From Tubulanus polymorphus (taxonomy: Eukaryota > Animalia > Nemertea), in assembly GCF_964204645.1 (NCBI RefSeq), contig NC_134030.1:18188210-18252209 (forward strand): a stretch of DNA of 64,000 nt, read 5' to 3'. Below, piece after piece: positions 3,001-41,059 of the stretch; the first letter of the stretch is position 1, and each line of letters opens with the position of its first letter. A model generated the notes under the pieces. It made no database searches and had not been told where the DNA came from. It saw only the letters and a program-made list of their open reading frames with translations. Both the position numbers and the translations under genes were made by a program.

Positions 3001-6000
3001 GATAAAATGAACTTCTGTTGATATTGCGATTGTGCTGTCGTTAGCTGTCGCATAGCTTATTCGAATCGCTATCGAAAGTAATCAAACAATGGTCACATGT
3101 GTCAATGAACTTATCGCTTTCCGATTGCTTAATCGCCAAATTTGCATTCGAAATATTAAGCCAATCTATTCTAATTCATACCTAGTCGTGTTATAAGCAA
3201 TTCAAGCGTTTAGTTTGTACTTTAAAATAGAATGAAATAGATTGATTGATGAAATACAAAACAAGTCAAACAAACTCAACTAACTGACTACTGCTGTGTT
3301 ATTTATATTTGATGAAAGAACATCTAGTTACTGACATTGGCTCGCGCCTTGATTATTGTCTAAGTTGTACTATAACTTACATGCCAATGGATGTTTACAT
3401 GCGCCTCTCTGATTGGCTAGAATCCTTGCATTCGATAGAAACTGACGGCATCAGTGAACTGACGGGGAAATTAGAATTGTATGTTTGTCCACGGATTCTT
3501 CGTTTTTGAGTCCATGGTTTTGGCTCTGGTTTTATCGTGAGTTTGATTAACGTACATTGTAGAGAACAATGGTGGGGATTCGAATAACGTGCATCTTTTA
3601 TTCAGAAAGAGTATCATTACGTATATACATGTAGAAATTAATACAATAACTCTAATCAGAATTATCTCATCACGCAGAACCAGTGAAATAGCCGTTGTAA
3701 AGCCGCAAAGTAAATTGAATGAAATTGACATAATGTCAACGTCTTACGGTCAACAAATGAAACATATTGTACAATAATGAACGAATCAATGAGTAGTGCT
3801 CACGCATTTGTTTCCATTTCATAAGAATCAATTCCAAACAGATGGTTCAGATTCGAATTTTTGCTTCTTCGTTATGCAAAGTTTTTTTTTTATACCAGGG
3901 ACTCTTAATCGATTTAGGTTTTAGAGTCCATGGTTATATGAATATCTTATGATTTCTCAACTTTCATCAAATACTTAGGAATGCCATTGAAAGATTTTCA
4001 AACCATTAAACGTTTGGGTAAAAAGTTCTGCTAAATTTGATTACCATCGGCTTTTTAGATAATCTCCACGAAGGTCACAATTTTAGTGATTTGACCTTGG
4101 GAGGTTTAAACCTCCCGAATCCAATTTGCGAAATATCGGTCCTCTTTGTCGGCGGTAATGAAAGAATACATAGAGCGAAGTTTCTATTGTGCGCCGGCCG
4201 CATTTTGTTCACGAATAGCTTACGTAATAAATTGAAAGTCGAGATCACAGGCGGATATAGCGCTCTATGGCCCACGCTCAATTCATAAACTGGTCCGCAA
4301 ATAAAGTGTTTAGAAGTATAATTGACACGTTTGTACGATTTTGCGCTGTAAATTTACCATTTTTCAGGACTCAAGGACCAGAAATTGGCAATATTTTTGA
4401 TACAAACTGAGAAAGTATCAAAACATTTGGGAACGTGTTAGTTGCCTATAAGGGCATGCGAGACTAAAATCTGAATTTCAGTAATAGCAGCGGCGGCCAC
4501 ATTAAAAACAACCAACGTATATTGAATAACAACAATTTTATATGATAGTTTGACTGTGATTTAGTTGGTAAAGACAATGGTTTTACAAGCCTACGTTACG
4601 TGGTTGCAAAATTGGGCTTGAAAATGTGATATTCGTGCAGTAATGTTCACCAAGAATCTGATGGTTACACAGGATCGTAGAGCTACATTGATATACATAG
4701 AATTTATTATTTTGAAACCACAACGTTTCGGCTGTTGACAAACAGCCATCATCAGTAATGACGATGGTGGTCATATTGAAAAACCGCTATATAATGTAAG
4801 GGGTGATCTCGATTTAATCTATGGATTTACTTTTTCCGTTGGCCCAAAGGGGACCATGCCAAAGGGAACCTCCAAAATTGGTGTTTATTTGACAGATTCG
4901 ATGAATGGGCTCCGTCATCAGAAGATATGGGGTAAAATCATTGTGAACGATTTTGGAATTTTCATAATTCAAGAAATATATTGATACGGTTTTAAGTAAA
5001 TACTTCCTCGATTTATCCGCTGATTATGTGTCAAGAATGCGGGCAAGCTAATGACGCAATTAGCGGAAATTACTGTATTTATTCGTGATGATTTATCTTG
5101 CACTTAGCTAGCTGTTAGAAATATCCAAAGTCTATTTTGTCATTTGAAACAAATACGGGTCCGGTGATAAACTCTGAAAAGATATCGCCATATCTCCTCC
5201 AATGACTTATAACTTTATTAAGTGCAAAAATCCTCTAGTTAAGGCAATAGATTCTTCTCTCCTCACCAATACTGCTTATCTTTTGCTATAGTTTCACTAC
5301 CTGTGGCCTCCACCGAGCACGGGACATGTTAAGTAAGCGAAAGACTGGTGTTTGAACTCCCTGAAAGACCCGAAATCCCGTCAATCACAGATTTACTACA
5401 AATTCTAAAACATAATTCTATAGGCGATTGGAGTTCAGTGGCCGGCTGGTCTAATAGTCGTATTTTCATTAACGAGTCTTACAATGCTTGGATCAGGGAA
5501 GTGTGATGAGATGGAATACGGACGCTTTTAATTGCCGGATGTAGGCTATTCAATTCAGCCCGTACATCAAAGGTTACCGCAACAGCAGTAAGCTACGCTT
5601 ATCGAGTGTGTGTTACCAGCTGAACACCAGTCAACATCAACTTTGATTCGGTCGCAGAACAACCCGCAATAGTTTTAGCCCGATAAATGTTCTGCGATCG
5701 ATACTACGCATGCGCACTGCAGTTCATTGAACAACGTGGAAGTGGCTGTGTATGCACATATTTTTCTTTAGAAAATCGGTTGAAATTCACCAATTTATCG
5801 TAAAATTTGTCCAAAAAGGTATGTATTTTTATTCTTCTATATCTCCGAAACCCGGTATCGGAACAATAAGTATTTATATTGTGATTAAAGTCTGTTTTTA
5901 TGTGTTAAACATATGTTTTTGCCAGTTCGTTCCGATTCCGGGTTTAGCGTTATTTGGGCCTTGAAGATGTCAAATATTTCGGCCCAGACTCGCGCAGCTT

Positions 6001-6184
6001 TCGTTTCTGACGTCATGTTGCTATGTTACGACACAAACATATACACGAAGTATGATCTTTAAAATGTGTATTTACTACATAATAACGTTTACATTAGGCC
6101 TACAAATTATTGTCCCCCATATAAACCAAGTTGCCTAAATAGCATCAGCAATCTCATTTAATTAACCTTTTCTTGTTTTTAGGC

Positions 6185-9112
6185 ATGGATCTTTGTCGAT
6201 TGTGTGGAAAAAATTCGAAACCTCCGGATCGTCGTCCTATCGATAAAAATAATTTCCAAAGCCATGTGAAGGAGTTGTTCAACATTGATTTTGATGATGA
6301 TACTGAACAGTACCCGATATATATCTGCAATATGTGTCGTGTAAAATTACAAAAATGGCGTAAGAACAAAAACGTTAAAAAAACTGTCCCTGTGACTATC
6401 AAATTAAAACAATGGACATTCGATTTATGTTGTGACTCACCCCTGCGTAAACTATGTGATGCAGCAGCACAGAAGACAAATTTTAAGAACATCAGCTCTC
6501 CGAACAGCCCTGTGAATACGTACGCTTTTTCCGATAAAGGCATACTGCGGCAAGCAATTTTAGAGGCTGATCAGACGTTGCGTTTATTCATTTCAAATAT
6601 TGAGGTTACATCATGCATTAATGGTAGTGTGGATGAGAAGTTTGTGTTTTTGCTCACTGCAGGAACCTGCCCCGGTAATCCCGATTTTAAAGATGTTTGT
6701 GAGAAACGCTGCAAGGATGGAAAAACACAGTTTTATGATCAGGCCGGAGCAATTATTGCTCAAGATATTTCAAGATGTGTCCAGTGGCGTGGTGAAATGT
6801 ATGATAGGACTGTTAGTCACTTGCATTGCATTCTTGCTTCATCAGATTTAGAAATTAATCAACAGTGTGCAGCATGTAAAGATTTCCGAAAATCTTTGCT
6901 CGTGATGAGGAAACGTCACGTAACCAATAATTCAAGAACTGATGTGTCAAGTACAACTAGATTGGATTATTTGACACATAGTGAAGCTATAAAACGTTTG
7001 CGAAATACACAGAGTGATCGACAAAAAGTTCTGCGTACAAATGCTGCTCTGGAAAAGAAAATATCGAAACTTTACAGAAGAGAATCAGTCTTATTAACTG
7101 AAAAACATTCCAGTCTTTTTCATAACATCATCCAGCAAAATCAGGACAAATTCCAGTCAGATTTTCCTACGGGCTCAGTCCAAGAATTACTCTGGAAGCA
7201 GCAAGTTCAACAGTGTAAAGGACCCACAACACAAATGCGATGGCACCCATTAATAATCAAGTGGTGTATCGCCCTACAAAAGAAAAGTCGTGGGACTTAT
7301 GATTTTATCAGAAATTCCGGTTTCATCAAATTACCTCATCCATCAACTTTAGACGACTACATAAAATTCACAAAACCGAATCCCGGCATCAATTTTGACC
7401 TTATTGAACGTGGACTACAGAATATTGGATTTGATAAACTCGAAGATTTTCAGAAAAACGTTGCGCTATTGTTCGATGAAATGAAAGTTAAAAGTGATCT
7501 TGTGTATTCGAAAAGCAGTGGTGAACTTATAGGATTTTTTGACATGGGTCCCGTCAACAACATTATGGAGACCTATAAAAGATCACTTTCCAACAAGAAA
7601 GAACCAGAACTAGCTACACATGTTTGTGTATTCATGATCCGTGGCCTGTTCAGTAATTTGAAGATGCCCATTGCATATTTTCCTTGTCAAGGATTCAATT
7701 CGCACAACTTATACCCCTGCGTTTGGGAAGCAGTCGAAACATTGGAATGCATTGGATTCTACGTAAGGGCATTTGTGAGTGACGGGGCAACACCTAACAG
7801 GAAATTTTACCGTATACATGGGCAAAATAAAAATGGTGAGCTGACCTACTTTACCACTAACAAATATGACTTTTCGAGGAAAATTTTCTTTGTGTGTGAC
7901 GTGCCTCATCTGCTGAAAACGACTAGGAACAACTTGGAAAATTCTGGATATGGAAAGAAAACTCGCAATTTTGTGGTAAGTACTAACATAATGAATATGA
8001 ATAGTAATTCTACACTAAATATGTAAATTAAGTATCATGCAATATTTCTTTATATTTTTCAGTACCAGCATAAACCACTGAAATGGACGCAGGTTATGTC
8101 ACTAGTAGAGAACGAATATGGCTTAAATCGGGCTGCACCAGGTTTAAGGCGTCTGCATAAGTTAAGACATGAACATGTCCATTTAACACCAGCAACTAGA
8201 ATGCGAGTAAATCTTGCTGTACAGGTTGGTATAAAACAAATTTTTACTTTTCATTTTTTGTCCTTACATCTTTGTTTTATTTAAATTGGCTTCTCTTTAC
8301 TGACTTTTAGGTCTTGAGTAATTCTGTTGCAGTGGCTCTCGAAATGCAGAATAATCCTGAAAATGAATCACTCGTACTCTTCATTAAAAATATGAATAAA
8401 TTCTTTGACTGTTTGAACGTCACCACCATTAATGATGCAGCTCGAACAAAGAACAGAAATTTAGAGAAATACACCTCAGCATATGATACAAGGGTTGAGG
8501 TAAGAAATTGTTAATTCCATTGAATAAATGGTAATGGATTGAGAATAAAAATTCTTAATTAATATTGACATTTTTTTCATTTCAGTGGCTAACTGAGGAA
8601 TTTATTCCTTTTCTTGATGATTGGCAGGGCGAATCTGCACATTATGAAAATCTCAACAAAAAGGAAAGATCGCAGAAATGCATGAGCTGGGAAACCCTCG
8701 AAGGATTGTGAATTACCGGTAAAGGCGCATTATTTAAGTAGCCGTGCATAAAGTATGTACATCTACGAAAAGTATATACCATGACTCATGAGCTTTTAAT
8801 TTTTCAGTTTGTTCTTTCGCCGAGTTGCTGAAAGTTGTGTTTAGAATCCCAGGAGTAAAATACTTTCTCAGTGAAAAACTCTGTCAGGATCCCTTGGAAG
8901 AACATTTTTCAAAACAGCGGGGATGTGGAGGTGCTCATGACAATCCTACTGTGCATGCATATGGACACAATGAAATATCTTTGTTTGTCGCCAGCGAGTG
9001 CGCTAAAGCCTCTCCTTCAGGAAATTTTAGAGGAAAACGGCAGGAACACCAACAGATAGATGCAGTTGATGACACACCAATTCCTCGAAAAAGAAAACGG
9101 GTGGAGTTCTGA
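6185..9112 (+). pseudogene. P-element/THAP9-family transposase, 5 exons, one premature stop
   Basis: Exons 6185-7975, 8063-8224, 8311-8499, 8586-8718, 8808-9112 (GT-AG, phases consistent). P-type motifs: RWHPLIIKWC...KLPHPSTL, LLFDEM (D), FVSDGATPN (D), CDVPHLLKTTRNN, RMRVNLAVQVLS, FFDCLN, QDPLEEHF (E)...DNPT. In-frame TGA at 8709-8711 (LEGL*IT, probably CGA>TGA). Confidence 0.92.
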
Positions 9113-9244
9113 GTGATAAGTGAAAAGACGATTAATTGCAAGACGTAAATTTTTATTTATTATACACTGACATACATGTTCATGAGTATGATTGTAATAT
9201 ATCGCACACAATTTTGTATATACAATTGGTAGTGTCACCATGTT

Positions 9245-10459
9245 TTAACTGTTGGTGTTTTCATTCAGAGTTGCTAGCGCCTTTCGAAGTGCCTTTTCAC
9301 CTTTGCGTGACACTTTAGTGGATTTGTCCTGTTTTTTAATGAATATGTATGCATCTTTGAATGCATTGATGCGTATGTCGACCCAGTAGCACAAAACACG
9401 ATGCAGGAGACTTTGGCACAAATCGTCATTGTCGACTTTACGCACTAAACATTGCCACAAATAATTTACAGTTATACTTTTTTCCAACTGATCTACTAGC
9501 TTGGAACGTACGTTGGCTCCAATCAATCTATCTACCTGTTTAATTTGCAATTCTGGTCGTATAATATTCTCAACAGTTTTGAAAAATATGAACACATCAT
9601 CACGAATGGTAAACAATCCGCCACGATTAATTTTTTCCACCCAATGACTCGTATATTCAAAATAGCTTTTAGCTTCGATTTTTGAATCATGTTTTATCCG
9701 CCAGGTTTCTAGTAGACTGATGAACGATTTGGCGGTTAAATTCTTCGGGAATTTCTGATAATGTTTTACGAGTGCATATGGTATATAACCTGCAGTGTAT
9801 CGCAGCGCCTGCTCCTCCTCGATCGTTAATTTCGCGATTGTTCGGCCATTTGTTCGGTCATGGTGAAATTGGTCCTCGATCATGTACTGAAAGAGGATCT
9901 TCATAGTAAATTGCAAAAATATGTTAACGGCTCTTTCATTTACTTTGTCAATTTTACATTTACTGAATATCTCCATCGTATAATATAATAGTTCGATTTC
10001 AGTTGTCGCAACATGAAACTTTGCCCACATTTTATCCAAATCTTTCGCAGTGCTTAAGTGAATGGCGGAACATAATGTATCTTGAATTTTTGTAAACCAC
10101 TGATTAATTCCAAGTCTGGACGGCGACGTATTTGTAGACAAAATTTTATCGATCGATTTTCCATAATGTACTGCTGCCATTCCATTTGAACTGAATTTAA
10201 ATACTCGATGGTTAATCACTTCAGTCATAGCCTTTTCCAAATATATAGTGTTCCTGCGAAAATAATAATAATGATTATTATTTTAACATGTACTTATCTG
10301 GATTTTTATATTATGTTTATATATTATTTTCTGTATTCGTTTATTATTTTATAACCTAAAAGGATTGTATTGATTATAAAAATAAATGTAAAAAATACCT
10401 GTATGTGTGTTTTCTCGTGTTCAGATCGCAGTCTCTGGTCAGCTGAGCCTGAGAAGTAC
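9245..10459 (-). CDS. Second gene of the P element, resembling the P-transposase C-terminal domain
   Basis: Main exon 10253-9245 plus a phase-compatible exon 10459-10399; the 5' end near 10550-10685 is uncertain. Motifs EQALRYTAGYI, WVEKINRGGL, YWVDIRI and a basic tail. Confidence 0.8.
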
Positions 10460-10850
10460 CTACATGAAAAAGAAAAGGAAAGAATAAAGTGCCTGCAATT
10501 AGGTGGAAACTATTCCGATATTTCATTGATTCAAAAGGAATAACACTCACTAGAATCGGCCGAATTAGTTGATCCTGATCCAGAGGATTCCCGTAATATT
10601 TCCGTATCGATCTGAACCAATTCGTCACTATCAAAGAATAGATCGTCAAAATCGTCATCATTAATAATTTGACAACCGTTGCCATTTTAATACAGCGTAA
10701 AGAACCGATATCACGATTGATAAAACACTATATCCGTCTGAAGCGATGTAGAGAGACTCCCACAATGATAACGAAAAAGTCCAAAAATGAAATAATGAAT
10801 ACTACAGAAAATTATGAGATATATATATACAATCCAGAGACAAAGAGACT

Positions 10851-11133
10851 AATCAAAGTTAATCAGAGATGATACAAACTAAAGGAAAATTAACGTAGAA
10901 ACAGTTACACGCTAAAACAGATTAAAGAGAAGCAGTTAAGAGACAAACTAGGGGGCACTTAAATTTAAGACAATTGTGAATACAAGTTGACCGAATCAAA
11001 GTTAATCAGAGATGATACAAACTAAAGGAAAATTAACGTAGAAACAGTTACACGCTAAAACAGATTAAAGAGAAGCAGTTACAGAGACAAACTAGGGGAC
11101 ACTTAAATTTAAGACAATTGTGAATACAAGTTG
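10851..11133. repeat. Tandem duplication (~143-bp unit, 2 copies) in the P-element right arm
   Basis: AATCAAAGTTAATCAGAGATGATAC...GAATACAAGTTGA at 10851-10990 and 10994-11133, near identical. Confidence 0.9.
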
Positions 11134-11637
11134 ATCGACTAAAATTGATGAGGGGAAATCAGGTGTTGAGTTTAACCAGTTTACAGAGGAATTTTTATAT
11201 AAGTTTATTATGGGATGAAAAACCGATATTCGGAAACAACTGAATTATTACGGAGATTCCCGATCTCGCTGGTTATCGCTTATCGGCGCGTTACGTAACA
11301 AAGCGCTCGCCGACGAACCGTTATCGGCTTTAGGGCAATTACAACGCACATTCGACAAGAGCTGCACAATAGCGTCCGTATTCCATCTCATCACACTTCC
11401 CTGTTTAAACATAAGGCGGACGTTGCATCCAATTTATTGTCTCCTTGTTTTTGTGAAACTCTTTGGAAAATTGATCTGAACAAATTTAAACACAGTCTGA
11501 TCTTTATAACCATGATACAGCTTTAACTATGAACAATTTTTTCATATAAATTTAAAGATATTTATCATCATTACTTAAGTTGAAATATAAAACCAGTAAC
11601 TGAATGATTGACATAATCAGAATATGTTTATTTACAG

Positions 11638-14600
11638 ACGTTCGCCCAGTGATAACTGATGCAGCGGGGAATCATTTAATGAATTATGAGGTGAAATTGA
11701 ATGAAGGAGAATCAAAAACTTACACGTGTAAACACGATAAAGGGAGAATAAACTGGAAATATCTATTAGAAAATGATGATAGGTGGAAACATTATTCATC
11801 CGGGAAACGATTAATAATCCGTGGAAATATGACACTCAACAACTCACAGTTCAGATGTTTCTACAATATCGGAAATTCCGTGAAAACGTTAGCAAATTTT
11901 TTAAAAGTAACAGTTATTCCCAAACCTAAAACTACACCGGGTGACCCTACTGGTAAGTGTAAAAGGCGGGATAGCAGTTTATAGATCCCCCTATGACGTC
12001 ATTAACACGATTAAGCATGTTTAAATGTATCATGTTTCTAGGCGCGGCTCGGAGCTGGAGGCGAGTAAACGACACGACTGTTTATATATACAATTACGAT
12101 GTGAAAACAACTGTCTCGTGTAAATGTGGTGACGATGACGCAATACATGCTATTAGACTAACCGGAAACACGTGGTCTATTCAGATCCCCGATAAAACCT
12201 GCACGTATAAATGCACTGATGACTTAAATATAGACATCGAAAACAAAGGTTTGTACATGATTATTATTCTGAATATATAGTTCTCGAATGGCCGCTAGGA
12301 GTGCTGATTTGTTTATGTTTTCAGATGATACTGGTCGATATTTCAAAAACTGGCGAGTTGAAGGTCGAGTGGTGAAATGGACCGCGCAACAACCTGGAAT
12401 CATGTTCAATGTTGCCCATCGTTTTAAAGCTAACAATCGATTCCTCAGCGACGGAAATGTCGTGAGCGAAGCTGTTAACGATCAAATGAGTTTAAATTTG
12501 ACGTTTCCGACAAATATGACCGGAAAAGTGGCAGTCATTGTGAAATTCACGTGGAAACATGGCGCAACAACCCGCAGCATGGAAAGAGAATTTACCTTTA
12601 AAATCGGTAAAGATGGCAGCACTGTCGTGGAAAATAGCGAAACAGGTAGGAGTAAGAGTTAGAATGCTGGGCACTAGGGGGAACTAGTACCTATCTACTA
12701 ACAGTTAAAAGTTGCGGTAGTTGAACAACCATTAAAGCGTAAAACACAAAATTTAGCATCATTTTTCATCATCAGGTATAAAACAAGGACTGCTTTGATA
12801 TGACTATTTCTATTTCAATCACCACATGTCATAATACACTTTTTTTCAACTGGCCCGAACGTCCTAGTGATGTCACAGCCTTTACGGCTCTGTTCAGGTC
12901 CCTATAATCGAACTAATAGTGGTAGAATTGTCAACTGTTAGACGTGAGGTTCAGAGATCGAAGCCTGAATTCTTTTTCATTTTTCGTTTCAGACAAAGCA
13001 AATACTGATCCACCAAAGGTGAGTATCTAGTTGTTTTATTCTATAGATAGTCAAGTTGGATGTCAATTTATTTAGTTGTTTTTTTTTAAATTATTTTGCA
13101 TTACATGCATTTCAAGTTTATATTGTATACTGCGGCCGCATTGTATACAGACTTTCTTGTCAGTGACAATGCGATATTTACCATAAAAGCAATTTGAAAC
13201 TTAATTTCAATTCATTTGTTTTTATTTTGCATAACATGTATTACAAGTTTAGTATAGAATCTTACTTTGGGAGATATCCGTGAAATATCAAACTTCATTA
13301 TCCTATCACTTTTAAGCTTTCAAGCCTCCAATACCGACCAGAATGGCCTAAAATTGTCTTTAATTCCTACCATTTTCCGGGGTAGGTCCCCAAAACCCCT
13401 GTCAATGGCTAACGCGCTCGTGAGGCATGGATACAGTTCACCCAGCTCTGGCTAGGGTTGCCTCCACAAAAATCCCCGTCGCTCTACGATCTTAGTCTAA
13501 CATCAGACACTCGGTGAAGGATAAAGCAGCCCGTAATATTGAGTGCCCTTATGCGATTTGGAACACTCTTGATCCACGCCTAATCCTGTCGTTATTTAAA
13601 CACAGTATATAAGCTATTTGCATATAGGATACAACGTTTTAAATCATTACGGGTTGAATATTGTTGATGATCGCAGTAACAAATATGCGATTAAATGGTC
13701 GTTCGTGATAGTAATTTAATCATTGTTATATCTTTCAGACTACATCGGACCCCAATCACTGGATTGTTATCGGCCTCATATTCTCATACATCGTTGGTGG
13801 AGCGGCTGGATACTTTTTGATCGTTGTTATCGCTGTTATTACTATTCGCAGGTATGAACTCGACATACCCTCCCTCCTCCCGGTATGAACTCGACATACC
13901 CTCCCCCCTCCCGGTATGAACTCGACATACCCCCCCCCCCGTGTTGATAGGAAAAACCCACAGTTGTTATACTTTGACGGTTTCGAAGTGTTGACTAAAC
14001 TTCAGCTAGATCTAAGTCAATCTCCTTCTTTCGCCATCGATATATATTTAACTACAACATCGAATTCGTTATAAGTTGAAGATGAAAAGTCAGTAAGTCT
14101 GGATGATGATAAAAATCAAACCGACCGGTGGGTTAATTTAAACAGTTAACGATGTTTACTTTTAAAAATAAATGCCGGGATCGCGAGATCAGGACTCGAA
14201 CCTAATGTGCACAACGAGTTTTATCGAAGAGAGTCTTGTGTCTGTGTCAAGACTTTTATGAAAATCAGAGCTTAAAAGAGAGCACTCAACGTAATACCAT
14301 TTGTCCTTAAAATGTTTGGTTGTACGTTTGGCACCAATTGTGGAATTGTGCAAAATCGGTACTAGATTTCTGTTATTTTGCAGTTCACAACCTTTTCGAA
14401 ATACGTTGAAATAAACTGTAAAAAATGCTGCATAAATTACACATTTCAGATGCAGACGACGTTCGTCCGGTGAAGGTCATGTGGATACTTCAACACAACC
14501 GCAACAGCTTGAAACCGGTGAAGGTCATGTGGACACTTCAAAACAACCGCAACAGCTTGAAACAACAAATGACGAGTTGAACATCTACGAAGACCCGGAC

Positions 14601-16102: not shown

Positions 16103-16943
16103 TTGTTTTATATCTGATGATGGAAAATGATGCTAAAATTTGTGTTTTACGCTATTATGTTTGTTCAACTACCGCAACTTTTAACTGTTAGTAGATAGGT
16201 ACTAGTTACCCCTAGTGGCCAGCATTCTTACTCTTACTCCTATCTGTTTCGCTATTTTCCACGACATGAGTGCTGACATCTTTGCCGATATTAAAGGTAA
16301 ACTCTTTTTCCATGTTGCGGGTTTCTGCGCTAAGTTTCCACGTAAATTTCACAATAACTGCCACTTCTCCCGCCATATTTGTCGGAAACGTCAAATTTAA
16401 ACTCATTTGATCGTTAACAGCTTCGCTCGCGACATTTCCGTCGCTGAGGAATCGATTGTTAGCTTTAAAACGATGGGCAACAGTGAACATGATTCCAGGT
16501 TGTTGCGCGGTCCATTTCACCACTCGACCTTCAACTCGCCAGTTTTTGAAATATCGACCAGTATCATCTGAAAACATAAACAAATCAGCACTCCTAGCGG
16601 CCATTCGAGAACTATATATTCAGAATAATAATCATGTACAAACCTTTGTTTTCGATGTCTATATTAAAGTCATCAGTGCATTTATACGTGCAAGTTTTAT
16701 CAGGGATCTGAATAGACCACGTGTTTCCGGTTAGTCTAGTAGCATGTATTGCGTCATCGTTACCACATTTACACGAGACAGTTGTTTTCACATCGTAATT
16801 GTATATATGAACTGTCGTGTCGTTTACTCGACTCCAGCTCCGAGCCGCGCCTAGAAACATGATACACTTAAACATGCATAATCGTGTTGATGACGTCATA
16901 GGGGGATCTATTAACTGCTCTCCCGCGTTTTGCACTTACCAGT
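16103..16943 (-). pseudogene. Truncated inverted paralog of the Ig receptor gene (two exons plus introns)
   Basis: Reverse-complement match to about 11949-12786 with scattered substitutions. Both candidate donors of the second exon are altered (GT>GC, GT>AT). Cut at 16943 by the transposon end. Confidence 0.9.
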
Positions 16944-17264
16944 TATGGAACGCGATTCATGCAATAAACATGACCATTGTTACGACGTAGGATAATTGCT
17001 GCGCCGTAGTATATTTGCGTCGGTGTATATTTTCTCCGACGTAGGATAATTGCTGCACCGTAGTATATTTGCGACGTGTCTACTTTTCATCGCATCTATT
17101 TCGCTGCGACGTGGGTAGTTTGTAACGACGTAGCTTATTTACGTGAAGGTTCCATAGTTCACCGTATGGTGGCGCCACGGTATTATATATTCAATAAAGT
17201 TAGAATTTAATTGAATCATATCGCTCTTTTCGACGCAACATAGTACGCCACAATCCGAAACTTT

Positions 17265-20200: not shown

Positions 20201-22431
20201 AGGTCTTCCGTTCTCAAAATCAGTTCATTGAATTTCATTGAACTGAATTTTTAGACTCGCGAATCCGTATACTATGCAAATATGCAATAAATTCATTCTT
20301 TTACTTAGGTATCGGAAAGATAAGAGAAAAATTCATTCAGATTTAATTAATCGAAATGTGGAAGAAATTGAACGCGGACGACCAACTATCTACCAGCGAA
20401 CCTGGCGGATCCTCGCCTGCCATGAGTGGAATCCTCGATTGCCGCAGTAGCGGTGTGTGGGTGCCCCATACACTCTAACCCTAACCAAAAAAAGTATTTG
20501 TTAACATTCACAAAAGCGACTGTAACCAAGTTTAAATCACATCATTATGTTGCACTTCATTAAGGTCTTTTCAATTTATTTTCAAAGGTTAAATATAGAA
20601 TGAAATATTTTCACTTTAGGGATGGCCGTTCTCTTGAGGTTATCGTAAAAGACCACGCTGCCAAGGTAGTTGAACAAGATTCCGAAGAGACATTGAGTTT
20701 CACGTGTAGAAGAAAGTTTATCTTTAAAGATGCCGTTGCTAAGCTGAAGAGGACGAATTCTTCAAAACTAACCAAGCCTGTTCAAGTGACCTTCTTGGGA
20801 GAGGCTGGAATTGACAATGGTGGTCCTCGAAGGGAATTCCTGGAATTAGTCATTTCAGAGGCTGCTAGATCTCCGCTTCTTGTTGGGCCAGAAAATTCGA
20901 GATCACTGAGTCATGACTTGGTAGCTCTGGATAACAGATCTTTTTTTCATTTTGGCCAGTTAATAGCTTTGAACCTTATTCATGGCGGGGCTGGGGCCCG
21001 CTTTTTTAATTCATTAATTGCCAAAATTATCCTGTACGAGAAGTATGATGCCAAAACAATCGTTGTCGAAGAAGTGCCTGATGTCGATTTACGCAAAAAA
21101 CTACAACAGGTGTAGTATTCATTGATTTTTTTAGCCCATTTGTACTGAAGTCCTAGTGGGCTGTTGCATTCACTTTTTAACCCACTTGGGCTATTGCTAA
21201 TTCCTCGACCTGTAGCTTCCTAATGAGTTTCAAGCTCATTGATTTGTATATGTTTACCATGATGTTGAATATTGAATTGTCAAATTGTCAAGCATTTCAC
21301 AAAGTAGGCATGGTTTCCCTGGACTCTCAGTTCAAGAGTTTGTATTCGGGTTCATTATAAGACAGTACTAATACACTTTTGATTGTTTCAACTTTCTTTT
21401 GCAGCTAAATGAGATTTGTGACGAAGCTGAATTGGTGAAATTTGTAGATGAAAATCTAGAATGTCGCTTTGAAATGGGCTTTACAAAACCCTCTATTTTC
21501 ATAAAATTGTCCGACAAACAAAAGATAGTAGAGTATCTGGCCTTGAACTCCCTGGTTCACCGTTCAAAATCAGAGCTAAACCAACTTCTAGAAGGTTAGT
21601 ATTTTACAGTTTAGCAGTAGAATTTGCGAATGCAGCTATATTACATTTCGGTCTCAGCTTGGGTTTAAGGTTGTTTTCTGTTCACGCAGAGAGCTCGGTA
21701 CGATTCTGTTCATTAGGGCTACAATGTTTGAATTCTTGTACATCTTATGTTATGCAGGCATGTCGACTCTCGGAGTTCTGGATCTCATCCGCAAATTCCC
21801 CTCATCATTCGAAAAGGTCTTTAGTGGGGCTCCAAGTCCAATGTCCGTAGACTACATGACACAGTTATTTCATGTTGATTACTCCCCTCCTGGATCAAAT
21901 AAGAGGGTAGAAGAAGAACAAATTATCATGAATTGGACGTTCTTACTCGAAGAATCATTTGGTAGGTTTAAGCACCTCCTGGTGTTATCATTTATACATC
22001 TACAGTCAAAATCCATTTTAAGGCTGCTATTCTTTTTAATTTCACTTTTATTTTTCACAGAACAAACTTATGTAACAAAATTATTATTTCTCTCCATTCT
22101 GAACGTGATAATTGAAACAAACAATGAGTTATTTTCATTAAATTCTGTTACAGAAGGCAATATCAAGGAAAAAACAGATGTTGGCGAGATGACCCTGTCC
22201 TTGGAGGATATTCACATGATTGTCACAGGATCTTCTCAGAAACCAATAATAGGTTTCCACCACAAGCCTAGGATCGAGTTCAATCATAGTGGTGATGGAT
22301 ACTTAGTACATGCCAATACTTGTGCCATGGTAATAAGACTTCCAGTGAATAAAAAGATGCTTGAGGTTAAAAGTTTTGTCAAGGAGATAACATTTTGTAT
22401 ATACAATTCCCCGGGATTTGGATGTATATAA
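17265..22431 (+). pseudogene. SAM - UBL-like - UBZ - UIM - HECT E3 ubiquitin ligase (G2E3-like HECT), ~715 codons, 12 exons
   Basis: Exons 17265-17327, 17804-17936, 18012-18139, 18343-18648, 18723-18808, 19122-19197, 19373-19434, 19686-19817, 20620-21109, 21405-21594, 21758-21961, 22154-22431; all phases consistent. SAM (DTDLTSMGVTRMGDRALL), CLKC...LREHTESC, UIM (DADLNQAIANSLAE), HECT (VTFLGEAGIDNGGPRREF, catalytic HANTC, terminal GFGCI). The start codon reads ACG and there is an in-frame TAA at 18107-18109. Confidence 0.88.
18858..18955. mobile_element. Palindromic MITE (same family as 52672-52780) in a HECT gene intron
   Basis: ACCCAGTTCCACAGTTGTGAGTTA...TAACTCACTACTGTGGAACCGGGT inverted ends. 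Confidence 0.7.
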
Positions 22432-23363: not shown

Positions 23364-25928
23364 TTACAATAATAAATGCAGGAAAGCTTGTCGGATTTCA
23401 ATATAAGCATTTTTTCCTAAGTCATGTTCTGTTTCCATTGAACTTCTTGACAACTCTTGGAACACTGGTAGATCTGCTTCATCTATGGGACATGGAGTTA
23501 AGGGCACCATAACTCTCTCGTGATCATCCAAGTTAGCTGCCATTAGTTCCTAAATGAAAGAGAATATAATTGGCACACATCATTTTGAGCTCAAAACTTG
23601 TATTACCAATTTATACAGAATATGATTATAAATAAATTAACTGAAAAATTATTCTACTGAAAAAGTTGTGCATGTGTTTTTTTTTTCGCTTACCAAATGA
23701 TCACCAACAGGAGGGCTGCCTTGGTTTTCACCTCTTAACCATAATTGAAGCGGTGACTGACCCACTGTTCTGACCTTATGACATATCCAGGCATCAATAA
23801 AGCGATTAATGCTGTTTTGTAGGCGGGGTAGAAAAACCATGTGCAAAACATACAGGTCAACGTCATTGTCTGCTATCAGTAAACCTTCTTCTTCTAGTGA
23901 ATGAAATAAATTATAGAAGGTAGATGTGCAGAGAGAATACACATCGCGCCAAAGTCTTTCTATCCGTTGATTGTGGACACTGCAGCCAGTAATAAAATGC
24001 CCAGGGCCTCTGTCAGGATGTGCAATTATGTAATCAGCAATTAAGACATTTTCTCCACCGTGGTCTGATCTAACTTTCTGGGGTAGCCCATATCTTTCGA
24101 CTGCATTTTTGAAACTCCTAAAAACTGTATCTGCTCTATTGTTGTTGCTACATCTCATAAAGACAGGAATCCGAGAAAATCCATCAATTCCCCCATGAAT
24201 TACTATACGCCATCTGAAAATTCAATAAATGTTATCTTTCAATGATATTGTTCATACAATGTATTACTAATATCCATGTAACAATAATGCTTTCTTAATT
24301 ATTGTTTGAAATACACATGAACTTCTCGTCAAAGGCTAAATATCGTGAAATCATTTTGGATAGAATACTTCATTTTGATATTTTTCAAATACATCGAGGA
24401 AATATTAAGTGTAAGTGACAAAAATCTATACCTAATCAACTTATGATTGCCATCTACATGCCATATAAAATTTGGCCCTGGAACCCAATATTCTCTTCTC
24501 TTCAGTGTTTTCCGTTTCCTCTCATCGATTCCATCTGGGTCGACCCGTCTTAACGACTCCCTTATCCGGTCACGCTGAACTCTAAGGCCTAAACTTTGTA
24601 TGTGGCCAGCATGTAGCTTTTCTCCCCAATTAGGATGAATGGCTACAGCATCTGCCACGATGTCATCAAGAATATCATCTGCAAATAGAAAAATTATGCT
24701 TTATTTGCTAGTAAGAAATACAGTAGACTCCGCCTAAACCAGTACAGTTGGGACTTTAATTTTTTCCACCGAATTAGGCGTTTACCGGTTTAAAGAAATG
24801 CGAAAACCAATGTAGCTGTATTCAGATATCATAGGTGATTTACAAGACCTTACCCACCTGATAATTTATCTGACATATTAGAGACGCGAAGTCCAAATTC
24901 CATAACACGTTGAGCAATAGTTCTTTCACAAACATTGAACATAATGCCAATCTCTTTATAAGTGAATGTATGTAGAATAAGATATTCAAGACTTTGATAT
25001 GGTATCTCTCTTTTAGGTCTTCCACGAACCATTGCTGAAATTTAATTATCTAGCATCAGATTAATAGGAAGAGAAGACATACGAGTATGACTAAAGGGAG
25101 CATCTCAAAATTTCGATAGTTACTTCAATTAGAATAACTGTCTAATTCTTTCTAACCCCCCACCCCACCCTTTCAAAGTTGGAACTATTGATTTTCTAAT
25201 GAGAAACCACAGACAAAGATAAAACATTCTAACGAGTGTATTTCGCAATTATCACAACTTTTAATTGAAAAATAAAATAGCAAAATTACAAGTGAAAAAC
25301 CTATTAAAGCCTAATAGACTTTTATAAACAAAATAAAATACATCTAAAATATCAACAGCATCTAAACGAGAGACGGTTCAATTCAATGTTATCTTTATTG
25401 CACCACAATAAATCGATAGTTCGGCAGTGGTGATGAATCCGCGGGAGGCCTTTACCCCCCCCCCCATCCCCTTCCGCGAGTTATTCTAATTGAAGTAACT
25501 ATCAACATTTTGAGATGCTCCCTAACTGAATATAATCAAGCAATCTCATCTCATTATTGGCCATTGCCTCAAATTGTTGAGCAAGAAATAATTTCAATAT
25601 TATGACATACCAACTTCTCGTGGAACTGGATTTTTGCACTTGTCTATCAGTAAGACTCTGTCGCCAAGATTGTGGACTCCTAATTCCACAAGCTGTTCAT
25701 GAGAAATATGCTTTACGATATCAATATTTACCTACAACAAAATGGTTAAAAATAAAACAATACTTTTATCTAGCGGTAATATTATCATTTGAATTGGTAA
25801 TATCCCATGATCCAGGAACCCATACACTCTCTGATATTCGGACTACTACTACTACTACTACTTACATTTTCTTCTTGAAATCTTTCGATTAGATGGTGTA
25901 GATTAAGTTCTGAGAGTACGACATTCAT
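23364..25928 (-). CDS. SAM-HTH-integrase-core (rve) DDE transposase, 437 aa, intact
   Basis: Exons 25928-25866, 25731-25611, 25034-24858, 24678-24432, 24213-23694, 23549-23364 (1314 nt, no stops). GRP+HTH (KEIGIMFNVCERTI), WHVDGNHKL (D), HGGIDGFSR, VRSDHGGEN (D), NQRIERLWRD (E). Confidence 0.92.
25095..25523. mobile_element. MITE in transposase intron 2 (possibly Harbinger-like)
   Basis: ~45-bp TIR AGGGAGCATCTCAAAAT(T/G)T(C/T)GATAGTTACTTCAATTAGAATAACT at both ends. Confidence 0.75.
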
Positions 25929-28900
25929 TGTATTGGAATTTGCGCGGAATTTGCCATTTGAGCTCAGACCACTATTCCAAAATCTTCTATATCCTATAGT
26001 AAAAACAAGAAATTCAAACGTTTAGTTCACATATAAGCGCGTAAATTCAGGGGAAATCCTGCGTATGCCTCATAGGCCAGCATCTTAGCTACGCATTTAA
26101 GTGGTTTTCGCCCCATGTACCCAACCTAACTTTTGAAATAATCAAACCTTTAGAAAGGAGGGGTATCCCAGTACAGGTATGCCAGTACATCCGAGCCAAA
26201 TATCTAAGGGAATCCCCCACCGGGTTTGGTACCCTTACTCCAAGCAAAAAAAGTCCAGGGAATCCCTTATTTCATCATCAATCTGTCTCTCAGGACCAAT
26301 GGATTTCATACATATAACCGAAATTCGTTACCTATCCCATTTGCAGAATTATGGCAACATTTATGGAGGACCTCTTTTTCATTTTAGGTACCTAATTGTG
26401 GTCTGATGCCATTTGCTCAACAAGCAATGGGGAATGGACCATGGGGAATCCCTGAGTGTTGCGTCGAAAAGAGCGATATGATTCAATTAAATTCTAACTT
26501 TATTGAATATATAATACCGTGGCGCCACCATACGGTGAACTATGGAACCTTCACGTAAATAAGCTACGTCGTTACAAACTACCCACGTCGCAGCGAAATA
26601 GATGCGATGAAAAGTAGACACGTCGCAAATATACTACGGTGCAGCAATTATCCTACGTCGGAGAAAATATACACCGACGCAAATATACTACGGCGCAGCA
26701 ATTATCCTACGTCGTAACAATGGTCATGTTTATTGCATGAATCGCGTTCCATAACTTCTGTATATGGATTCTGACGGTGATGGTTCGAGGTACTATCATC
26801 ACCCCTCCCTTCCCATGATAGTAGACCGAGCTATGCCCGCCAATCTACGACCAAATTCGGTTTTTTGAAATATTATACAGTGTAATTGTGTAACTGAATT
26901 TAAGCCTAGATGAAATACAGTATAACTGAATTATAGTGTAGATGAAATACAGTGTAACTGAAGCTAAGTGTATCAATTTAAATTCAATTTCAATTTCAAT
27001 TTATTTCAGAGTAAAGCGTAGCATTGTAGAGATTAAAAACAGTGAAACTGAATTGGTGTACCGTAGTTGAAATATAATTTGTAACTATATCGAGCAGAAA
27101 TACATTCAGTGGTGTACATGTAATTACTTTTTGCAAAATTATCAGTGGTATTTCTTTCATCCCTTAATCTTACATTGTATCACTGTATTTTGATTAAAAT
27201 ACAATGTAACGAGTTAACAGTTTAACTATATAACAATATATCTTAAGTTAAAAAATGTGCTTTTTATTTCATTTGAAACAGTTTTGTAAAACAAAAGATT
27301 TTTGGACTTAAGGACCACTTTGGACCACTTTCGGACTGGCCCCAAGCTGGTAAAGATGTGCTGCTAGAAATTGCTAATAATGTAACGTGATTATTTTATT
27401 CGCTTAAATAAAAAGAATTTATCTATAGAGATGTTCTTGTGTTAACTGCAGCTGGGGTAAAATGAAGTGAACAGCGTTTTCTGGTGGAGGATAAGTCACA
27501 AATTAAAAACAACCTACAATTTCTTTTAGAAATATTTTTTAGAGTTGATTCCATATTTTTCTGAGTTTAAAAAATGGATAAATATTCTAATATATAAAGC
27601 ATTAGTATTCAATTCTCAAATCAATTTGATGGATTCAAAAAATTTATAAATTTTATGCATGGTGGAGAATGGATTGATTTTAGTAGAAACCCGCAGTTTA
27701 TAGAGGGAAGATTGACATATGTAATTCACTGATCTCAGTGAAACGCGACACTTGGTTGTTCGGCCATTATTGTCTTACGTGACGCTGTACCATTCACCAC
27801 GAAGTTACCGCAGTGTTGGTTACACTAGAATCTTAGAGCGCCGCAGATCTCTCTGTGGAGACAACCTCACTGCCAGGACTGGGTGTAGATTGTACCATAG
27901 ATCTGTTTTACCACCGGTACGTATATCTTCACATCTAGAGGTGTTTGTTCATCTTCTGCAAAATCAGACAAAATATCTATACTTACCCTTTGTGAATATG
28001 TAAGATCAACTAAATACAAGATGTAACTTGATAAAGGTGAGTTATTGAGGTTTTAATTTCTACTGCATGTGTTAGAAATATCCTCTCTTCTAGAAAGCGC
28101 TGCTACAAACACTCTGAAAATGTCTTATTCCAGGTAATTGTCACAGACTAGTTTTAGAAGTAAAGGCTATCTTAACATGAAAGTGAAACTCTGCATGATC
28201 AGGATTAGAGGGCGGTGATGAAATATCAAAATATGTCTGTCACAGGGATGGACAGAGACTGCTCATCTATTGGTTAAACACATTAGAAATGAACTACATT
28301 GTACATTGTAGGTATTGTACATACTACAATGTTCTTGTATCGAGTCAAATCCTGACGGCAATTTTTTCAGATGAGCTCTTCTTTCCTCAGGATCTGGATG
28401 CTGCCAATACGAGCTGACGAAACCAACCCGACCGGATAGATAGGTGGTGAGTAGATGACCAGATCATAAAGTGTTATATGTATCGAGTAAGATTAAAAGT
28501 TCTAATGGTGATCGTTACGTTTTTATTTCAGATCCAGCTCTTCTTCCTCAGGACCTGATTGCTGTCAATCAGTGCTGACTAAACCAACGGATACTAAATT
28601 AGTTGACTTCACACCTTCCTCACTTCTTCGGGACCTGATTGCTGTCATACTGGGCGTATTAACTGCAGTTTAAATGTGCACGGTCCGATAGAAGATGACT
28701 CCCGTGGAAAAGATAATCCAGAAACTGCTCACATTAATTCGGTGAGCAGACATTTTAACTGTTTGTGGTATATAGGAAACACTTCATCAATGATACAACG
28801 CAACTATTTGACTAGGTTTAAATCACGTTTCAACCACGTTTTTCAAAACGGTTGTTTATTTGATTCCCAGAGAAGCTTCAACTGTTTTCAAACGCTTAAG

Positions 28901-31732: not shown

Positions 31733-33558
31733 ATGGGAAATGACAGAAATAAACTTTGTTGTTATGGATTGTGCAATAACGATGGTCGTTACCCAGACAG
31801 ACCAGCGATGCAAGGAGTTTTTTTCATAAACTTTCCGAAACCGAAAACTCAACTTGACAAATGCAAGCGATGGATACAGTGCTGTGGTCGACCTCATGAT
31901 CAGTTCAATGTGACTAAGATTTCAAAAAACACGTTCATATGCAGCAAACATTTTGTTGGGGGAGAGGGGCCAACTTCAGATCACCCTGATCCAATACCAG
32001 CAACAGCAACTACTGACCAGGTAAAGTACTCTTATTATTATGAAAATATAAGTACATAAACTGGGCCTCTATTGTTCTCATAAATGGCAAATGATAAGTA
32101 GAAATCGTTAGCAATGAATTCTTAACATTTCAAAAAAATAATAATTAACTTCTGATTATCATATTATTATTCAAGGTGGAAAAATTCTGTCGCAAACGTC
32201 GCAAGGCCCCTACACCTCGTGGATCAAGTACTCCGACGAGTAAAAGGAAACGACTAAATGATGAACGAGATGCTGCTTTAAGTCTCCTAGATTTGAGTTC
32301 TATTATAACAACCCAATCTGAAATTAATGACGCTGAAGTTTCAGCCCAAGAGTTTTTGGATTCATCGGTAAATTTCTAATATAGGGCCTATCCTATTTAC
32401 CTAAGTAACTTCATATGCATGACTGATTTTAATGGGCAAAAACTTTCTGAATTCCAGATTAAGACTGTGGGTGCGCAGACAGATCCTGTTTCATGCAGAC
32501 CTTGCGTTGAAAGGAATGAAATTGGAGTTCAGACTATTTATTCAAAATATGAACTGCAATCAAAAATTAGCACTATAGTTATGAAAAATAACCTCAATAT
32601 TTCTCAACCATCAAATTTATTTGTTGAGGATAATCAACCATCGTTGAGTCTTCAAAAACTGAAAGAAGACGACAAGAAAATGAAATATTTCACTGGGCTG
32701 ACGTATCTTCAGTTTGAGGCTCTTTTCAACTTCCTTGGACCAAGCGTCAATAATCTCAGATACTGGAATCGCTCTTACAAATGTGACAAAAGTCCGATGA
32801 CTTCGATGCGCAGGACAAAACCTATGGACGAACTATTTATAACATTAGTGCGATTACGACGAGGCTTTTACTTTCATACGATGTCATTCCTTTTCAAATT
32901 ATCCGAATTCAGCCTGCGGTCAATATTTACAACATGGTTACAATTTCTTTACTGTCATTTTAATGATATGCGTTCTGTTATGTTTCCTGACCGTACCGTT
33001 CTCCGTCGTTTTCTACCAAAATCGTTTAAGGGATTCAAGAATGTAAGATGCAGTGTCGACTGTACTGAATTCTTCTGTGAAATGCCTCGAGACTTCACTA
33101 GACAAGGAAATTTATATTCCAACTACAAGCACCATCACACATTTAAGTGTCTTATTGCTGTGGCCCCAAATGGAACAGCTGTATTTGTTTCCAAGTTATT
33201 TGAAGGCGCAGTGAGCGATCGAGAAATATTTGAAAAATGTGGGATTCTTGATTATTTAAATCCGGGTGATCTCCTCTTGGTGGATAGGGGATTCACTGTA
33301 CAGGATCTATTGCTCTCTAGACAAGTTGATATGAATATCCCACCATTTTTACAGGGTAGAGATAAACTGACACCACAGGAAGAATTGTTGACAAGAAAAA
33401 TAGCAAAATCTAGGATTCATGTTGAACGGTTCAATGAAAGAATGAAAAAATTTAGATTAATATCCGGTGTTATGCCACTTAGTATGACACCCTAAGCCAC
33501 CCAAGCTGTATTTGTTGCCTGTTGTCTTGTCAATTTCCAAGAACAGCTAGCAATATAG
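31733..33558 (+). pseudogene. THAP + HTH + DDE_Tnp_4 (Harbinger/ISL2EU) transposase
   Basis: Exons 31733-32020 (THAP: CCYGLC...FP...W...ICSKHF), 32176-32367, 32458-33558 (VDCTE, YSNYK, VDRGF, RIHVER). TAA at 33493-33495 precedes a conserved-looking tail ATQAVFVACCLVNFQ that ends at TAG 33556-33558. Confidence 0.88.
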
Positions 33559-33729
33559 AAATTGTACAATATAAATATGTATATATCACGTAAAATTTTT
33601 ATTTCATACATTTTAATGCAATTAACAAATCTGAAATACATGTATATTCAAAATATAAATGTACAATATATGTTGAGAATATACAAAATGAAATTATTAT
33701 ATGAATACATGCATTTATGTTCATTTATT

Positions 33730-35788
33730 TCAGCTCAGGATAAATGGGATTAGATTTCTAGGCACTCTCATTTCAAATATTTCTGGAGCAATGACAACAT
33801 TCCATAATTTCAAATTTTTTTCCATGATATCATTAATCAATTGGATATCGGGATAAATCTTTTCAACTGATGGTGGTCCTTTTGATGACCAGAGAACAAA
33901 ATCACACCATTTGAATCCAGTAACACCTAACTGATACTGGATTTGATGGTAATATTGATGGGAGTGTTTTAGCATTAACTTATCATTTTGGATTTTAAAA
34001 CACGCTGACTGAAGAATCTTACTCTTGATGCTTCCATTCTCGTAATTCCTAACAAGATCTTCTACAGAAATACTTTCCAGAATCTTGAGGATCTTTATTT
34101 CGATTAACCCATAATTATTATTTTGTGAATCATAAACTAACCCGTCGGGACTACAGGCTAGTTGAGGGTAAGTGCCGGATACCCATAGCCCTGTCTTTGA
34201 GACCACGTAATGAGGATTAACGGAAGCGTAATCCAATCTGGCTTGATCTTCGAAGTCAATGCCTCTTTGCATGTAGCTAGTTGTTATCTGATCCAAATTC
34301 CAAATTTTCTTTTTGATGAAATTTGATACCCGTCGCAAGACAGCAGAAGACCAGCCACAGTGCGTGCTTGCGTCCCATATCATGACCGCTTCTTTGGCCG
34401 TCGAAGCTGTCATTCTCATATATCTATGGGAAATCCATGTTTCGGTAACTGATTGGTCCTCTGTATTGTCTATCATTATGGAATGTAAATTTTCTAATTT
34501 TCCTGAGGGGGACAGGTTGTACTTCAATTGGCACAATAACTGGTGAAGTGTGTCTCGCCTGTCATCTGTCAAAAGGTAATCATTGTACTTATGAATAAGT
34601 ACAGTTTCCCACATACATTTGACATTTTTAGCCTGATTTGCCTTTTGTAAATCGCGCAGAAATCCGTTAATTGCTTCATCCGAAACAATCCGTTGATTTA
34701 GAGGGCGTGGATCGAAGTTAATGACCGCATTTTTGCGAGTTGATTTCGTCGACTTATAAATGGCTTCATTAATACAAGATGGTCGTTTTTTTCTGCCTTT
34801 TTTCCACTGACATGGTAGGTCAGTACACGCCGGGCTGTTTTGTCCAACATAATCCGTAAGATTAAGTAGTAATGCAGCAATATGACTGCACCTACTTGAA
34901 GCTGATGCTTTACAGTGACAACTGGCATCACGGACAGCCCCACTTGCCATTGATAAGGTCACAGTAACACTATATTCAATGTCTTTCATTGATGCCTGTA
35001 TAGTGGCTTTATAATGACAAACATCGCCTGATACCTTCACTTTGATCGGACTCACATTGTCTGATGACACATACTGACGTCCCCTTCGTAGTGACTTTTC
35101 AGTCACAATCCCTGTAAGGTTGCCATCATCATCATCATCCCCATCATCGCAAACACCAGTAACAGACAATGTTGGCATGGATTCCACTAACCAGTGGTAA
35201 GTATGTCCATAATTGAATAGTGGTGGAAGTTCTAAATTAAAATCTTTCCATCCAGTAATCGGCAGAATCGTAAAATGTCGCATTGGAGTCTGTTGACTCG
35301 TTAAATCACTCAATTTTTTTCGTACCATTTTCCTTTGTCTATCTTGACATCAATTTCAACCCCCATGGCTAACGCTTCTTTGCACCTGAAAACAGAAGAT
35401 ATCAAAAACAAGTTTTAACAACCGTTTTATATTTCATTTATGAATGTGTAAAATATTTTGGAAGGAAATTTGTTCAAAATGTTTCTAATCAGTGGATGCT
35501 CTGAATGAATATTTCAGTATAGGCCTATACCTCCTATCACTCCAAACTAAGTTATAAAACCCATCACTTTCTTCAAGTGTGATGGAATAGATAATAATGA
35601 GATATATCATCAAAATATGTAAAAAGTACTTACCGCTGGATAAGGTCTGCTCTTCTACCACTCAATCTGAGGCCTCTACATTCTAACCAGCGTTTTAACT
35701 GAACATTGGTGTGTTGCTCTATCTCTGCAGATAGTTTAGCACCCGGTACGTCATCTTCAGTTAATTTGATAATTTGAATTGAAGCCAT
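33730..35788 (-). pseudogene. SAP - SWIM - YqaJ (lambda-exonuclease-like) accessory protein
   Basis: Exon 35788-35634 is a SAP domain (QLKRWLECRGLRLSGRRADLIQR). Exon from 35385 needs a +1 shift in the A7 run at 35314-35320 to join the 532-aa ORF. SWIM (CHCKAS...CSHIAALL); YqaJ (RMTAS, GIDFE, SPDGL, IEIK, YYHQIQ). Confidence 0.87.
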
Positions 35789-40105: not shown

Positions 40106-41059
40106 ATGCTGGCTGCACCTTCAGTACCCCGCAACCGCACAAACCCCACTAATCTTTACACAGCCATCGTACTGGCTCCAACTACGATAAACGGAACTTA
40201 TCTATGGTTTTACCTCGTATTCGCCGGTCTGTGTTTTATTCTCGGACTCGTCGGTAATCTCCTCATCGTGATAGTTTTGCGGCGACGTAAATTATGGCGA
40301 CGTTCTTTTAGTCGTATGTTCGTTCAACTAGCGGTCTGCGACACTCAGGTTCTCGGCTGTTACTTCATGAAATACATCAACGTTATATCTTATACATTTC
40401 ACGGAAGGATACTGGTCAAACCGTCAACACGTATGCAATGTATACTCTTTGGTTATTTTATATCAGGTGGACTCTCGTGCAGTCCGTGGACGCTGGTCCT
40501 CGTAGCCACCGAGCGAATGTGTGTCGTTCGTTTTCCGTTTAGAGGTCCTCGTTTCTGGAGCACGGATACCGCTTCTAAACTCTGTGTCTCCGTAATATGC
40601 TTCGTAGCGCTGGGCTTTAGCTATTTACTTGTAACTATCGATGTTAGTGACAATGGTTGTGTCTATATAGATATGCCCCTGCTTACGTCCATCCTTGCCT
40701 CGATAGGTCCGTTTATGCTGTTAACCATCATGTCCGCGATAACATCTATCACGTTATTCAGAAAAAAAGGTGGCACATCGGAAACAACTCGAGCATCGAA
40801 ATACTCGAACCAGGTAACCGTGTTGGTTCTGTTACTGTGCGTCTTTTTCATGGTTACAACATTCCCGACTTTTATCATCAACCCTTTTGTCCTGAAAAAT
40901 CCAGAACTAAAAAACATCTTCGCCGTCCTCAACGATATTTTAATGATGAATTATTCGTTTAATCTCTACTTGTATCTAATGACGGGAAAAGAAATCAGAA
41001 AAGAATTGTGGAACATGATTTTCAGAAAGAAACGCAACGTATGTCAAATCTTAGTTTAA
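40106..41059 (+). CDS. Intronless rhodopsin-family (class A) GPCR, peptide-receptor/chemoreceptor-like
   Basis: 317-aa ORF with seven hydrophobic segments. TM1 GN, TM2 LAVCD, TM3 ERM (DRY variant) followed by VRFP, TM6 TTFP, TM7 NYSFNLYLY; N-terminal N-glycosylation sites. Confidence 0.9.
   Translation: MLAAPSVPRNRTNPTNLYTAIVLAPTTINGTYLWFYLVFAGLCFILGLVGNLLIVIVLRRRKLWRRSFSRMFVQLAVCDTQVLGCYFMKYINVISYTFHGRILVKPSTRMQCILFGYFISGGLSCSPWTLVLVATERMCVVRFPFRGPRFWSTDTASKLCVSVICFVALGFSYLLVTIDVSDNGCVYIDMPLLTSILASIGPFMLLTIMSAITSITLFRKKGGTSETTRASKYSNQVTVLVLLLCVFFMVTTFPTFIINPFVLKNPELKNIFAVLNDILMMNYSFNLYLYLMTGKEIRKELWNMIFRKKRNVCQILV

Follow-up and report, generated by a model that had tools for sequence, protein, structure and literature searches.

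A convergent partner gene with a predicted P-element C-terminal domain in a widespread lineage of animal P-superfamily transposons

A large and widespread lineage of animal P-superfamily transposons has, as a conserved trait, a split gene layout, in which the transposase gene stops short of the C-terminal domain (CTD) and a second gene on the opposite strand converges on it tail to tail. Structural models and profiles support the identification of this second gene as the P-element CTD. We describe the layout in an element of the nemertean Tubulanus polymorphus, located in a window of 64,000 nucleotides (NC_134030.1, positions 18,188,210 to 18,252,209), and in its relatives. To our knowledge, the P transposases described so far are single chains. 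Among the full-text papers open to searching, we came across none that reports a P transposase divided in two; in Repbase or the N-RAG-TP paper, the second open reading frame (ORF) may already be on record without its identity having been recognised, and the two-gene group is apparently undescribed.

The element and its transposase gene

Table 1. Features of the Tubulanus polymorphus element, in window positions
Feature	Position	Strand	Description
Whole P-superfamily DNA transposon	5494–11403	+	5910 bp, damaged copy
Left terminal inverted repeat (TIR)	5494–5529	+	36 bp; starts CAGGG; TIR pair 97% complementary
Transposase exon 1	6185–7975	+	RAG1-NZD/zf-AD-type zinc finger (no THAP), coiled coil, HTH, RNase H N-part, DxxH
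Catalytic D residues, exon 1	7475–7477 and 7781–7783	+	RNase H N-part
Transposase exon 2	8063–8224	+	GTP-binding insertion domain, first half; weak PF21788 match; splicing predicted
Transposase exon 3	8311–8499	+	GTP-binding domain, second half; FFDCLN motif
Transposase exon 4	8586–8718	+	Premature TGA at 8709–8711 in window copy
Transposase exon 5	8808–9112	+	RNase H C-part, catalytic E 8897–8899, 70-aa tail, basic PxPRKRKR end, no CTD
Gap between the two convergent stop codons	9113–9244		Exactly 132 bp
Gene 2 exon 3	9245–10253	-	Helical domain, P CTD (predicted), basic terminal helix
P-element CTD (predicted)	9326–9835	-	Exon residues 140–309, corresponding to Drosophila 617–734
All-helical domain	9836–10252	-	Residues 1–139, N-terminal to the CTD
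Gene 2 exon 2	10399–10459	-	61 nt, predicted
Gene 2 exon 1	10551–10685	-	ATG and acidic, Ser-rich N-terminus, predicted; frame lost in window copy
Tandem duplication	10851–11144		~143 bp; right subterminal region, upstream of gene 2
Right TIR	11368–11403	-	36 bp

The ends of the element read CAGGG..CCCTG, and its target-site duplication (TSD) is 7 bp long and variable in sequence. All 18 other copies examined have a 7-bp TSD, exact in 17 of them; the window copy has none at its ends. Elsewhere in the 268-Mb genome are two further long copies, more than 99% identical, and ~37 internally deleted copies of 2.2 kb. The latter are non-autonomous, fall into two deletion classes and retain window segments 5494–6419 and 10091–11403. 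The element is young, and the family has moved recently. The convergent layout is seen in all three long copies, and a single contig from an independent DNA run crosses the junction between the two genes (8101–9885); the element was found in none of the RNA runs.

Each of the three long copies is damaged, so the assembly holds no complete one, and an intact transposase is present in none of them. The premature TGA in transposase exon 4 occurs in the window copy only, where the sister copies read AGA. A 4-bp deletion near 10669, seen against all other copies compared, puts gene 2 exon 1 of the window copy out of frame. The second long copy (C8) has an intact-looking gene 2 and a 1-bp deletion in the transposase, and in the third (C4) 5 bp are deleted and a portion of gene 2 is missing.

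The five predicted exons of the transposase (gene 1) are joined by GT-AG introns, all in phase, and comprise 859 codons; the spliced models of both genes were searched exon by exon rather than as joined proteins. Pfam identifies a zf-AD-like finger, the P-type HTH, both RNase H parts and the GTP-binding insertion (PF21787, E = 2e-26; PF21789; PF12017; PF21788 on exons 2–3). The sole PDB match in the sequence search is the Drosophila P transposase (6p5a_A), which the gene 1 profile follows to residue ~565 (E = 2.5e-43). Gene 1 ends at the start of the flexible linker of the Drosophila enzyme, and the natural break falls inside this linker. In the profile alignment to 6p5a_A, the GTP-contact positions K385, V401, S409, F443, D444, N447 and D528 are kept and K400 is replaced by R; the D581-P-H584 motif is invariant in 67 relatives. 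With these contact residues present, the insertion domain of gene 1 is a putative GTP-binding module. The structure model was built for the transposase of a Patiria relative (P0154), not for gene 1 of the window, and Foldseek aligns it to 6P5A chain A with an E-value of 1e-23, versus 4e-5 for RAG1.

No THAP domain was found at the N-terminus of gene 1, which instead has a zf-AD or RAG1 NZD-like finger that matches the zinc finger at the N-terminus of RAG1 (21WB, E = 5.5e-8). At the other end, the initial annotation had described a transposase that stops shortly after the DNPT motif, faced by a gene on the opposite strand. This description is confirmed: gene 1 stops 70 aa past the E of QDPLE and 53 aa past DNPT, and 132 bp separate the two stop codons.

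The partner gene and its conservation

Gene 2 has three predicted exons in undamaged copies, which together encode 402 aa. The motifs quoted for it in the initial annotation are located in the minus-strand ORF at 9245–10240. The ORF and its convergent orientation stand, and the extent does not, as the first coding exon (10685–10551) lies beyond the end previously given to the gene. The initial annotation had also overlooked the TIRs at 5494 and 11403 and the damage to the window copy. The AlphaFold model of exon 3 is all-helical, with a pLDDT of 90.6. Residues 140–309 superimpose on 6P5A_B with a Z-score of 12.1 and an RMSD of 2.3 Å over 118 of 118 modelled residues (next match, Z 7.1), at 20% identity in an all-helical domain. 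6P5A_B is also the top Foldseek match of the whole exon model (probability 0.95, with an E-value of only 0.58). The top Atlas cluster for gene 2 carries THAP9_C, and the commonest weak Pfam match among gene 2 homologs is Tnp_P_element_C (10/140). Sequence-only searches with gene 2 returned nothing in Pfam, in the PDB or, by features, in the ESM Atlas, and its identity emerged through the profile and structure routes only. These matches support the proposal, made from the letters of the DNA, that gene 2 is a predicted P CTD carried by a separate gene on the opposite strand; the comparison with Drosophila P by structure and profile, set beforehand as the test on which this proposal could fail, left it standing.

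The helical domain preceding the CTD (residues 1–139) has no clear structural match (best Z 6.7, not significant). Protein 2 retains the basic terminal helix, and its N-terminus varies: 5 of 140 homologs have a PHD finger and 4 have C2H2 fingers, mostly in single-exon gene calls. The search with exon 3 returned 1,122 relatives at E ≤ 0.001, which accounts for over a thousand orphan protein clusters annotated as uncharacterised.

Truncation of the transposase is not peculiar to the window. The CTD is present in cis in none of 50 complete related transposases (23 + 27), so that its absence, first noted for gene 1, holds across the lineage; in most of these proteins, the catalytic E is followed by 55–75 aa, which close with a basic motif that is conserved. 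A survey for the convergent partner found it nearly always present. Searching metagenomes with the last transposase exon yielded 80 loci, 52 of them informative, with enough downstream DNA or a match, and there the partner is convergent in 43, on the same strand in 2 and undetected in 7. Grouped at 80% identity, the counts are 25, 1 and 3 of 29 groups, for a survey limited to its own clade because searches rank close relatives first. Convergent partners also occur at loci of Branchiostoma belcheri, B. floridae, Hydractinia, Mytilus and Patiria, which represent amphioxus, a hydrozoan, a mussel and a starfish. Both genes lie inside TIRs flanked by a 7-bp TSD in Hydractinia, Mytilus, B. floridae and two metagenomic loci, and a TSD of this length is found at the loci of four other hosts. 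Within the Tubulanus polymorphus genome, 11 of 13 diverged gene 2 matches sit tail to tail with a last transposase exon, a pairing that rests on coordinates and five short loci. No relatives were found in viral contigs or prokaryotic genomes.

The partners are annotated in RefSeq as separate genes, whose separate models have isoforms. Gene 2 is under purifying selection, with a dN/dS of 0.11–0.13 between species; in the sole pair in which the catalytic exon is unsaturated, its value is 0.12 versus 0.11 for gene 2. A THAP-bearing sub-group (P0285, P0291, P0293, P0294, P0296, P0300) has the same truncated transposase, and the similar loci L116 and L118 have a convergent partner, so that the split spans both N-terminal types. 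A Ptychodera locus (L057:8001–10313) has a PHD-bearing partner gene and no last transposase exon within 8 kb. Positions 7328–11943 of this locus are spanned by a TIR-like pair with a 7-bp TSD, and the locus is possibly an element carrying gene 2 alone.

The same-strand group consists of two near-identical loci from two metagenome assemblies, L101 and L102, whose host is probably a sponge. Here, the helical domain and CTD follow downstream on the transposase strand (L102:3022–4503); two GT-AG introns would preserve the frame, and in each locus a single in-frame stop directly precedes the basic motif. The L102 ORF aligns to gene 2 residues 67–330 (probability 99.7). Since residues 67–139 are thus present in both loci, half or more of the helical region also occurs outside the split form, and the earlier suggestion that this N-terminus arose after the split lacks support in that form. 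An inversion of the 3' part, directly past the basic tail motif, separates the two states. A quick, unrooted tree of 170 columns, built without a canonical P outgroup, places L102 among convergent elements with weak support (85–86). The L102-type element may be either the unsplit state or a re-inversion.

A candidate two-subunit transposase

In the Drosophila P complex, the CTD is tethered to the RNase H domain through a disordered linker and positioned between the RNase H and the GTP-binding domain of another subunit, where it binds the looped transposon strand and aims a basic helix at target DNA (PMC7776569). We infer, with good support, that the enzyme described here consists of two proteins. 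In its simplest reading, which we consider probable, protein 2 occupies the Drosophila CTD site in trans, and the transposase is encoded by two convergent genes. Each gene would be read inward from its own element end. Protein 2 would then dock at the CTD site of a complex like the Drosophila strand-transfer complex and bind the looped-out transposon strand, with its basic helix reaching target DNA, and the active transpososome would contain two kinds of subunit. More speculatively, the N-terminus of protein 2, which varies from acidic in this element to a PHD or C2H2 finger in several relatives, might direct the complex to chromatin; this targeting role is a guess.

As the main alternative, protein 2 could be derived from the CTD and serve as an accessory factor that tunes target choice or represses transposition, the core transposase being sufficient by itself. 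Such a role would suit the variable chromatin-reader N-termini (PHD in five and C2H2 in four homologs, mostly single-exon calls) and the separate regulation that separate promoters would permit, and accessory genes exist in other DNA transposons (PMC9587614). We regard it as unlikely, since losses of the partner are very rare in the lineage, constraint on gene 2 is similar to that on the catalytic exon in the single pair that is unsaturated, and protein 2 keeps the basic helix that in Drosophila aims at target DNA. It is highly improbable that trans-splicing joins the two convergent transcripts into an ordinary single-chain transposase: the spliceable, same-strand arrangement of L101 and L102 makes a joined protein plausible, but each gene has start and stop codons of its own, both the spacing from the catalytic E to the transposase stop and the basic end of the protein are conserved, and RefSeq keeps the gene models and their isoforms separate. 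A single internal inversion in a dead P element, or an error in its assembly, which the damage and missing TSD of the window copy might suggest, is refuted by the occurrence of the layout in three copies, independent sequencing contigs, several diverged families of this genome and several phyla, under purifying selection.

Returning to the enzyme encoded by two convergent genes, the natural split indicates that the CTD is apparently able to act in trans, and makes it possible to ask whether P transposition requires it for end pairing, for cleavage or for target capture. It offers a model for the passage from a one-gene to a two-gene transposon in which one subunit reads chromatin, a question that persists for RAG1/RAG2, and cautions that many invertebrate 'THAP9' genes may encode no more than half an enzyme. 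As a gene-transfer tool, a transposase in two parts could be switchable or retargetable. A broader proposal, which is a real possibility and which we advance tentatively, is that an old, animal-wide lineage has obligate two-subunit P transposases in which the freed CTD took on the part of a targeting subunit whose chromatin readers (PHD, C2H2, acidic tail) can be exchanged. If so, the RAG1-type finger and tail-to-tail layout would represent an independent arrival at a RAG1/RAG2-like design, and the lineage would be a possible further source of the RAG1 N-terminal finger.

Relation to known transposons and other features of the window

P-superfamily elements are characterised by a 7–8 bp TSD, a 17-nt staggered cleavage of their ends and GTP-dependent strand transfer. 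The element is a member of this superfamily by its core, GTP-binding domain, TIRs and TSD, and departs from it in having neither a THAP domain nor a single-chain transposase. It shares with Drosophila P (6P5A/6PE2), Galileo, 1360 and vertebrate THAP9 the DDE RNase H core with DxxH, the GTP-binding insertion, the HTH, the predicted fold of the CTD, TIRs starting with CA and the 7-bp TSD, whose palindromic bias is also found in Galileo (PMC4168063). In contrast to these elements, the CTD is encoded apart from the transposase, by a convergent gene that adds a helical domain and an N-terminus of variable type, and a RAG1-type zinc finger replaces THAP in the sub-group of the window.

RAGL/ProtoRAG elements (RAG1L-RAG2L) likewise have two convergent genes inside one TIR pair (PMC7204232), a RAG1 N-terminal zinc finger on the transposase and a partner in which an acidic stretch and a PHD finger can occur. 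The core here is P-type and not Transib, the partner is a piece of transposase and not a kelch propeller, and the PHD finger is N-terminal and optional. Membership in RAGL/Transib is ruled out by the P-type core, the all-helical partner and the 7-bp TSD (versus 5 bp and RSS-like ends). The initial annotation had called the arrangement RAG1/RAG2-like, which is upheld for the tail-to-tail layout and not for gene 2; because the fold of gene 2 is not RAG2-like, the comparison is an analogy of layout only, to which the common N-terminal finger and optional PHD add a resemblance. RAG1-like N-terminal zinc fingers are also found on the transposon proteins N-RAG-TP of Aplysia and Chapaev (PMC8355894; 10.64898/2026.01.24.700457), the latter with a CMC-type core, and a 2026 preprint ascribes the RAG1 finger, among transposases, consistently to Chapaev only (10.64898/2026.01.24.700457).

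Second genes inside TIRs occur in several superfamilies as unrelated accessory proteins, whereas gene 2 appears to be a domain cut from the element's own transposase. ISL2EU (YqaJ) and Harbinger (Myb/SANT) elements are examples, and Kolobok Kol0 has KolX (PMC9587614). Membership in Kolobok is ruled out by the CAGGG..CCCTG ends and 7-bp TSD (versus RR..YY and TTAA) and by a partner that is not the Cys-rich KolX.

The window contains further repeats and genes. At 32419–35328, a DDE_Tnp_4/HTH_Tnp_4 transposase (+) lies tail to tail with a YqaJ exonuclease gene (-) and looks ISL2EU-type, a known kind. A perfect 300-nt inverted repeat (16941–17240 and 26457–26756, 9.2 kb apart) with internal 19-nt repeats encloses an integrase-core ORF (rva_4, 23649–24158) and ORFs at 20600–22431 that appear HECT-like by eye; this unit is probably a young TIR element. 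An inverted duplication of ~840 nt (11949–12786 and 16103–16943, 94–95%), with coding exons that look Ig-like, stops where the 300-nt repeat starts. A single-exon rhodopsin-family GPCR at 40106–41059 is an ordinary host gene.
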